64,000 nt of DNA. Source: Octopus bimaculoides (taxonomy: Eukaryota). This document shows positions 5,230 through 63,323 of the stretch, piece after piece. The notes below the pieces were generated by a model that was not told the DNA's origin, made no database searches, and worked only from the letters and a program-made list of their open reading frames with translations. Position numbers and translations under genes: made by a program. The stretch is taken from contig NC_068984.1 in NCBI RefSeq assembly GCF_001194135.2, forward strand, positions 122,898,921 through 122,962,920, given 5' to 3'. Within the stretch, counting starts at the first letter, position 1. Every line of letters starts with the position of its first letter.

Positions 5230-63323
<58,094 letters not shown>

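Follow-up and report, generated by a model that had tools for sequence, protein, structure and literature searches.

Introduction

The 15 residues in front of the FLVSF sequence of the ankyrin ZU5-N domain form an extra strand, beta0, which is antiparallel with beta1 (Li et al., bioRxiv 10.1101/2020.03.04.976142), and the presence of these beta0 residues raises the affinity for beta-spectrin 10- to 20-fold (bioRxiv 10.1101/2020.03.04.976142). At this beta0/beta1 junction the vertebrate Ank3 gene inserts exon 34 (33 nt, 11 residues), which lowers the binding of beta-spectrin (10.1101/2020.03.04.976142, PMC6906172, 10.1101/2023.10.29.564567). [quoted passage not shown] A splice-controlled insert at the ankyrin ZU5-N junction is therefore already known from vertebrates.

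In this study we analysed a stretch of 64,000 nt of Octopus bimaculoides DNA (referred to as the window), for which a preliminary description, made from the sequence alone, had proposed an 18-nt coding microexon right where ZU5-N begins. We compared this exon with the vertebrate cassettes and with the corresponding sequences of other animals.

Results

Identification of the ankyrin gene

The exons of XP_014773619.1 (O. bimaculoides ankyrin-2-like isoform X1) were located by tblastn on the + strand of the window with up to 100% identity, spanning from about 5.2 kb to about 63.3 kb, and the ZU5-N, ZU5-C and UPA exons were mapped downstream of the microexon. On the basis of this mapping the window was identified as an ankyrin gene of O. 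bimaculoides. The 37-residue peptide flanking the junction is identical in the O. bimaculoides models. The ORF of the ZU5-N exon has a precomputed Pfam match (PF00791), and phmmer comparison of ZU5-N with ankyrin chains of known structure gave E = 1.9e-53 to 6M3P_E, followed by 6M3Q and 4D8O, and also 3F59/3KBT. The domain is thus a ZU5-N of the canonical ankyrin type (ANK1/2/3, Ank2, UNC-44), the DAR motif included. Dozens of O. bimaculoides ankyrin entries (A0A0L8H...) are labelled 'Titin' in UniRef, which is a naming error of the source; these entries carry ANK repeats, ZU5, UPA and death domains.

Sequence and splice sites of the 18-nt exon

The constitutive linker exon upstream (24327..24502, + strand) was read directly and matches isoform X1 (tblastn). 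It ends in phase 2 with ACT TAC TCA GG/gttagt at 24502, where the slash marks the splice junction, and its 3' end encodes a conserved 15-residue extension ending in ..TPTYSG. The first ZU5-N exon (37813..38037, + strand), likewise read directly and identified by PF00791 and the PDB alignments, starts with cacag/T TTC CTG GTC AGT TTT ATG GTG GAT GCC CGC at 37813, the first T being the third base of a split codon; it contains beta1 and the DAR spectrin-binding motif, encodes ..GVKFLG, and ends in phase 2 (..CTT GG/gtaagt).

Between these two exons lies the cassette microexon CAAACTAAAATGGAAAAG (25866..25883, + strand; 18 nt, phase 2-2), which encodes (G)KLKWK(S) and is directly preceded by ctgttttttcaaccatag, i.e., ...ttttttcaaccatag, and directly followed by gtaact. 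Its 3' splice site (25846..25865, + strand) consists of the pyrimidine tract ttctgttttttcaaccatag ending in AG, with 78% pyrimidine in the region from -20 to -3, while the 5' splice site AAG/gtaact (25884..25889, + strand) agrees with GTAAGT at 5 of 6 positions. With inclusion the junction reads GG/C AAA CTA AAA TGG AAA AG/T, i.e., G-K-L-K-W-K-S, both junctions being in phase 2, and the hexapeptide KLKWKS is placed between ..YSG and FLVSF, which are joined directly by skipping. The segment thus has the features of a cassette microexon, i.e., a length of at most 27 nt that is divisible by three, ag/.../gt borders, and a frame shared with both neighbours. Acceptor, phase 2-2 exon and donor were found letter by letter as proposed in the preliminary description, and a genuine coding microexon does lie at the beginning of ZU5-N, six residues ahead of VDAR: the 18-nt segment is a real cassette exon of the O. 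bimaculoides ankyrin gene and is included in the existing annotation. Simple repeats are also present inside the flanking introns: past the 24502 donor (24532-24568) an A run precedes (CA)n, and at 37737-37750, upstream of the 37813 acceptor, lies (CA)n/(TA)n.

In the intron between the two neighbouring exons (24503-37812; 13.3 kb, 34% G+C), 446 AG...GT candidates of 3-51 nt are phase-compatible and free of stops, but only the segment at 25866-25883 combines a pyrimidine tract of at least 75% with a donor match of at least 5/6. When both strands of the 64-kb window were searched with a degenerate pattern based on the ortholog proteins (AG-N-[K/R]-[L]-x-W-[K/R]-A[GC]-GT), it matched a single time, at 25864-25885, and it had 0 matches in 100 dinucleotide-preserving shuffles. 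The 418 nt around the microexon occur only once in the window, and the microexon is not crossed by any longer ORF on either strand.

Inclusion and skipping in octopod protein models

A search with a bivalve ankyrin as the query detected approximately 50 distinct O. bimaculoides models (UniProt A0A0L8H..., RefSeq XP_0147736xx), all with KLKWKS. When the distinct octopod protein models were taken together, the hexapeptide was present in 92 of 95 and absent in 3 of 95, these counts referring to predicted gene models. The three skipping models, XP_014773626.1 (X8) and XP_014773643.1 (X23) of O. bimaculoides and GAB1600876.1 of Argonauta hians, were found inside 90%-identity clusters. The existence of both forms, which is one part of the on/off switch proposed in the preliminary description, is in line with the annotation, since inclusion and skipping are both represented among the predicted models of O. 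bimaculoides and several other species.

Two other sites of alternative splicing were recognized in the same gene. The last ZU5-N exon ends at either of two alternative 5' splice sites 30 nt apart (41750/41751 and 41780/41781), of which the short donor at 41750 reads GAA G/gtcaaa and leads to ..NGSFE-E-LDQ, and the long donor at 41780 reads ..CTG TGG A/gtgagc. The short form at 41750 was present, among the 95 octopod models, only in the three that skip KLKWKS. This could represent coordinated splicing, or it could be an artefact of few supporting transcripts. The UPA exon carries tandem donors 6 nt apart (48629/48630 and 48635/48636; TCC G/GTAAGC/GTAAGT), which give ..CSISG-GTTP or ..CSISG-KR-GTTP, and the O. 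bimaculoides skip isoforms X8 and X23 are without the KR insert. Because the three skip models differ at two other sites as well, they may be derived from a few transcripts.

Conservation of the hexapeptide among protostomes

Across protostomes we identified the consensus [KR]-L-x-W-[KR]-[ST] directly before FLVSF. The hexapeptide is carried by 213 of the 359 sequences gathered, and its Trp is invariant except for a single Phe. It was found in bivalves (Mactra KAL4240424.1, Ylistrum and Potamilus), gastropods (Biomphalaria, Nucella and Pomacea) and the nemertean Tubulanus, and among arthropods in the odonate Ischnura (GKLQWKT), a mayfly (GKLHWKT), spiders and Limulus (GKLKWKT), ticks and a barnacle, together with Drosophila-type Ank2, in which GRKLSWKS stands before FLVSF. 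Orthoptera, Phasmida and Hymenoptera carry the variant IP[HQS]W[KR]N. The skipped form (..G/FLVSF) was found in Mizuhopecten, Sinanodonta, Bulinus, Arion, Elysia, Owenia, Priapulus and Strigamia, and both forms are annotated within one species for Biomphalaria glabrata, Potamilus, Parasteatoda, Argiope and Bacillus rossius, besides O. bimaculoides. The arthropod variant GKLxWKSFLVSF, which had been mentioned in the preliminary description, thus exists, in the Drosophila-type, spider, Limulus, odonate and mayfly forms given above, and the exon is therefore ancient as had been suggested, being at least protostome-wide from the spread of the motif across molluscs, nemertean and arthropods.

In spiders, ticks, termites and crustaceans (P0337, P0342, P0355, P0336, P0356) one or two further cassettes are located in the same intron upstream of KLKWKT, for example RFSWADDFYSLFPKGMSRS and ..GMWRES / GMWRDR. 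Their combinations vary, and the arthropod junction therefore hosts several alternative exons. Two sequences with a ZU5 resembling deuterostome ankyrins (..TCRLVKP..) read G-RLHFRS-FLVSF (P0501) and G-RMNPRS-FLVSF (P0488); as judged from sequence, it is possible that they represent a degenerate version of the motif outside protostomes.

Organization of the exon in other genomic loci

The identical 18 nt (18/18) were found as a separate exon in a bivalve-like locus (L007:5222-5239, an ENA contig) in the arrangement ttccttcttcag/CAAACTAAAATGGAAAAG/gtaatt, 4.7 kb upstream of the ZU5 exon of that locus, which is identical to that of P0464 and nearest to scallop ankyrins. Alignment of the octopus and L007 introns around the microexon detected nothing conserved beyond ag, the 18 nt and gtaa. 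The adjacent ZU5 exons of the two loci share 72% nucleotide identity, with 26 of 62 synonymous third positions (42%) identical, whereas within the microexon 5 of 5 synonymous positions are identical (roughly p = 0.01). This difference suggests that the microexon may be constrained at the RNA level, e.g., by splicing enhancers. The region upstream of the microexon in the same ankyrin intron (L007:1-4453, + strand) contains two long ORFs (>837 aa and 899 aa) with no Pfam match on record, and these may belong to a transposable element.

A different organization was found in the fly-type locus L010, in which the upstream phase-2 intron is kept, ..GTG GG/gtaagt..tttag/T CGC AAG CTG AGC TGG AAG AGC TTC CTG, and no downstream intron is present; the motif is therefore constitutive in the fly-type locus. 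The Drosophila-type Ank2 (G-RKLSWKS-FLVSF), together with genomic ORFs carrying RLKWKT or LEWRT, resembles the octopus gene in motif, position and upstream phase-2 intron, but the motif of Drosophila-type Ank2 is fused to the ZU5 exon, so that it cannot be skipped as a cassette, and it carries one extra Arg. The microexon was not detected within 9.6 kb upstream of the ZU5 exon, where the contig ends, in the closest genomic relative L001 (ZU5 exon 85% identical in nucleotides), nor within 10 kb upstream in L004-L006, of which the ZU5 exon resembles those of bivalve ankyrins; the corresponding spacing in octopus, 11.9 kb, is longer than either interval, and these negative results are therefore uninformative.

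Structural position and comparison with the vertebrate cassettes

Alignment by phmmer of the octopus junction with 6M3Q chain E, in which DNVALSSSPIHSG is followed by FLVSF, gave as the sole gap the six inserted residues, located between HSG and FLVSF. The extension encoded by the linker exon aligns to DNVALSSSPIHSG, i.e., beta0 of exZU5-N, and the insert is situated exactly at the beta0/beta1 junction. The DAR motif follows six residues downstream of the insert, and its Arg is needed for beta2-spectrin binding (AnkB R977Q, PMC12681835).

The mouse Ank3 junctions, as deduced from printed shRNA targets (bioRxiv 10.1101/2023.10.29.564567), read ..GG/G TTT CTG and ..TCA AG/G TTT, and the intron phase is therefore the same as in octopus (phase 2). 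Ank3 exon 34 and the Ank2 cassette share with the octopus exon the intron and its phase, the split Gly codon GG/N, of which the third base opens the ZU5 exon, the insertion between a 15-residue beta0 extension (..HSG) and FLVSF, and the nature of a short symmetric cassette. In contrast, the vertebrate cassettes are 33-36 nt long against 18 nt in octopus, and their peptides, YSSPLPQYDS-R in ankyrin-G and R[LST]SPCLD[RH]DNS-S in the ankyrin-B type, are polar/acidic and without Trp, whereas the octopus KLKWK-S is basic/aromatic; no similarity was detected between KLKWKS and YSSPLPQYDSR or RLSPCLDRDNSS. In addition, mature neurons mostly skip the vertebrate exon, whereas the octopus exon is included in the majority of the models. 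The octopus and vertebrate cassettes are thus tied by position and phase while the peptides are unrelated, and common descent is hypothetical.

Another Ank3 microexon, E35a (27 nt, PMC13046794), is similar to the octopus exon as a short, symmetric and conserved cassette of the ankyrin family that tunes a protein interaction, but it differs in its location within the disordered linker between UPA and the death domain, in its complex partners (InsP3R/NKA) and in its conservation among vertebrates (PMC13046794). E35a was rejected as the known counterpart of the octopus exon on account of this location.

Sequence motifs of neural splicing programmes

The octopus exon resembles the microexons of the SRRM4/eMIC programme in its length of at most 27 nt, its divisibility by three, its deep conservation and its association with a protein-interaction surface. 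The upstream UGC element of this programme, however, was not found, since neither the octopus window nor the bivalve-like L007 has a TGC in the 80 nt upstream of the 3' splice site. With regard to neuron-enriched inclusion, the single hint is the presence of the hexapeptide in the giant 7515-aa model P0459. The Rbfox-type element (U)GCAUG occurs once in each of the two loci, as TGCATG at +213 in the window and as GCATG at +69 in L007, which is near the chance expectation and was not accepted as evidence.

Discussion

Taken together, the microexon is almost certainly functional. The role that we consider most likely, with a probability of roughly 0.65 and by analogy with the vertebrate system, is that inclusion or skipping of the annotated and conserved KLKWKS cassette at the beta0/beta1 junction tunes the coupling between ankyrin and beta-spectrin. 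The presence or absence of KLKWKS would change the geometry of the beta0-turn-beta1 hairpin beside the DAR motif, and the alteration of this hairpin, of which beta0 stabilises ZU5-N in vertebrates, would raise or lower the binding of beta-spectrin. Such a role is plausible because Ank3 exon 34 is inserted at the same junction and lowers the binding, and this shared position gives strong indirect support to the spectrin switch proposed in the preliminary description, but the vertebrate insert is unrelated in both sequence and length, and the analogy may fail for this reason. The majority inclusion in octopus models, the constitutive presence in the fly-type gene, the strong constraint on the sequence, the amphipathic, strand-like K-L-K-W-K and the invariant Trp point to specific contacts of the insert and less to a mere disruption of beta0. 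Modelling of the extension, KLKWKS and ZU5-N by AlphaFold2 with a 40-sequence alignment gave a mean pLDDT of 53.9, with residues 18-50 below 50, values too low to reveal the packing of the insert. The surface of spectrin R14 is reportedly acidic and that of ZU5 basic (Ipsaro et al. 2009, 2010); if these charges hold, the three added lysines could strengthen the binding of spectrin.

Several other readings were weighed against this tuning of spectrin coupling. The segment might be a chance pseudo-exon, i.e., an open-frame AG...GT pair that splicing never includes, and the 446 phase-compatible, stop-free candidates in the same intron indeed indicate that such configurations are common; nevertheless this reading is refuted and has practically no probability left, given the peptide at the same position in annotated proteins of O. 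bimaculoides and more than 20 other species, the failure of the ortholog-derived pattern to match in any of the 100 shuffles, and the identical exon in the bivalve-like genome. A stronger competitor, though still an unlikely one, is that KLKWKS serves in practice as a constitutive, structural element of an extended ZU5-N and that the skip models are rare or noisy, without any regulated switch. The high inclusion among octopod models (92/95) agrees with this, as do the fusion of the motif into the ZU5 exon of the fly-type locus, its contiguity with the flanking sequences in the genomic ORFs P0002, P0006 and P0009, and its inclusion in the giant 7515-aa model P0459. The constitutive state of the motif in the fly-type locus and several genomic ORFs fits a structural as well as a regulatory role. 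Against a purely constitutive part speak the coexistence of models of both forms in at least six species of two superphyla and the maintenance of a separate 18-nt exon between two long introns where the introns of the lineages no longer align.

The remaining two readings concern the peptide and its codons. The basic/aromatic strand KLKWK might serve as a docking patch for acidic phospholipids or another partner, independent of spectrin affinity, for which the alternation of three Lys with Leu and Trp and the specific contact implied by the invariant Trp could be cited. We regard this as rather improbable, since the insert adjoins the beta1/DAR spectrin interface and since the only phosphoinositide site mapped in ankyrin, the PI3P-binding pocket, is a basic pocket in ZU5-C and not in ZU5-N (PMC4274267); the binding of acidic lipids, which the preliminary description had offered as one possible target of the switch, is thus left unsupported. 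Its suggestion that the AAA codons of the microexon are potential ADAR recoding targets (K to R/E), which would provide a second layer of diversity, has fared no better, and such recoding is judged very improbable. Coleoid cephalopods recode neural mRNAs heavily, which makes such recoding conceivable in general, but the fold of the 318-nt region around the exon is poorer than that of its shuffles (z = +1.74; an equal or better fold in 97 of 100 shuffles), so that no local duplex supports editing, none of the octopod protein models has the Lys residues replaced by R, E or G, and the Lys/Arg positions are conserved across phyla. Pairing with a more distant complementary sequence would be possible.

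With respect to evolution, it is tempting to regard the beta0/beta1 junction as a bilaterian-wide hotspot of splice control, occupied in the same phase-2 intron by two unrelated microexons, the protostome KLxWK[ST], older than the protostome ancestor, and the vertebrate exon 34 family, but this proposal is tentative and we would not yet favour it. The protostome insert may act oppositely to exon 34, a gain of contact stabilising the binding, and it may represent the ancestral state that was replaced in vertebrates, as is hinted by G-RLHFRS-FLVSF in the deuterostome-like P0501.

The exon itself is less new than the preliminary description assumed, because it is already included in RefSeq and UniProt models, and the new content of this study is its comparative and structural context. 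Literature searches with the peptide strings yielded only papers on lipases and none on ankyrin, and no paper was found that describes the octopus exon, a protostome-wide KLxWK cassette, or the position that such a cassette shares with exon 34. The coupling between ankyrin and spectrin organises excitable membrane domains, and in mammals it depends on a single mini-exon at this junction whether beta-IV spectrin is held by ankyrin-G at the axon initial segment. The use of an unrelated, protostome-conserved 18-nt exon at the same junction suggests that tuning of this interface at the level of splicing may be a general feature of animal ankyrins. This suggestion of generality is based also on the presence of a nucleotide-identical exon in octopus and a bivalve-like genome of which the introns do not align, and Drosophila Ank2 and molluscs would provide tractable models for testing the mechanism.
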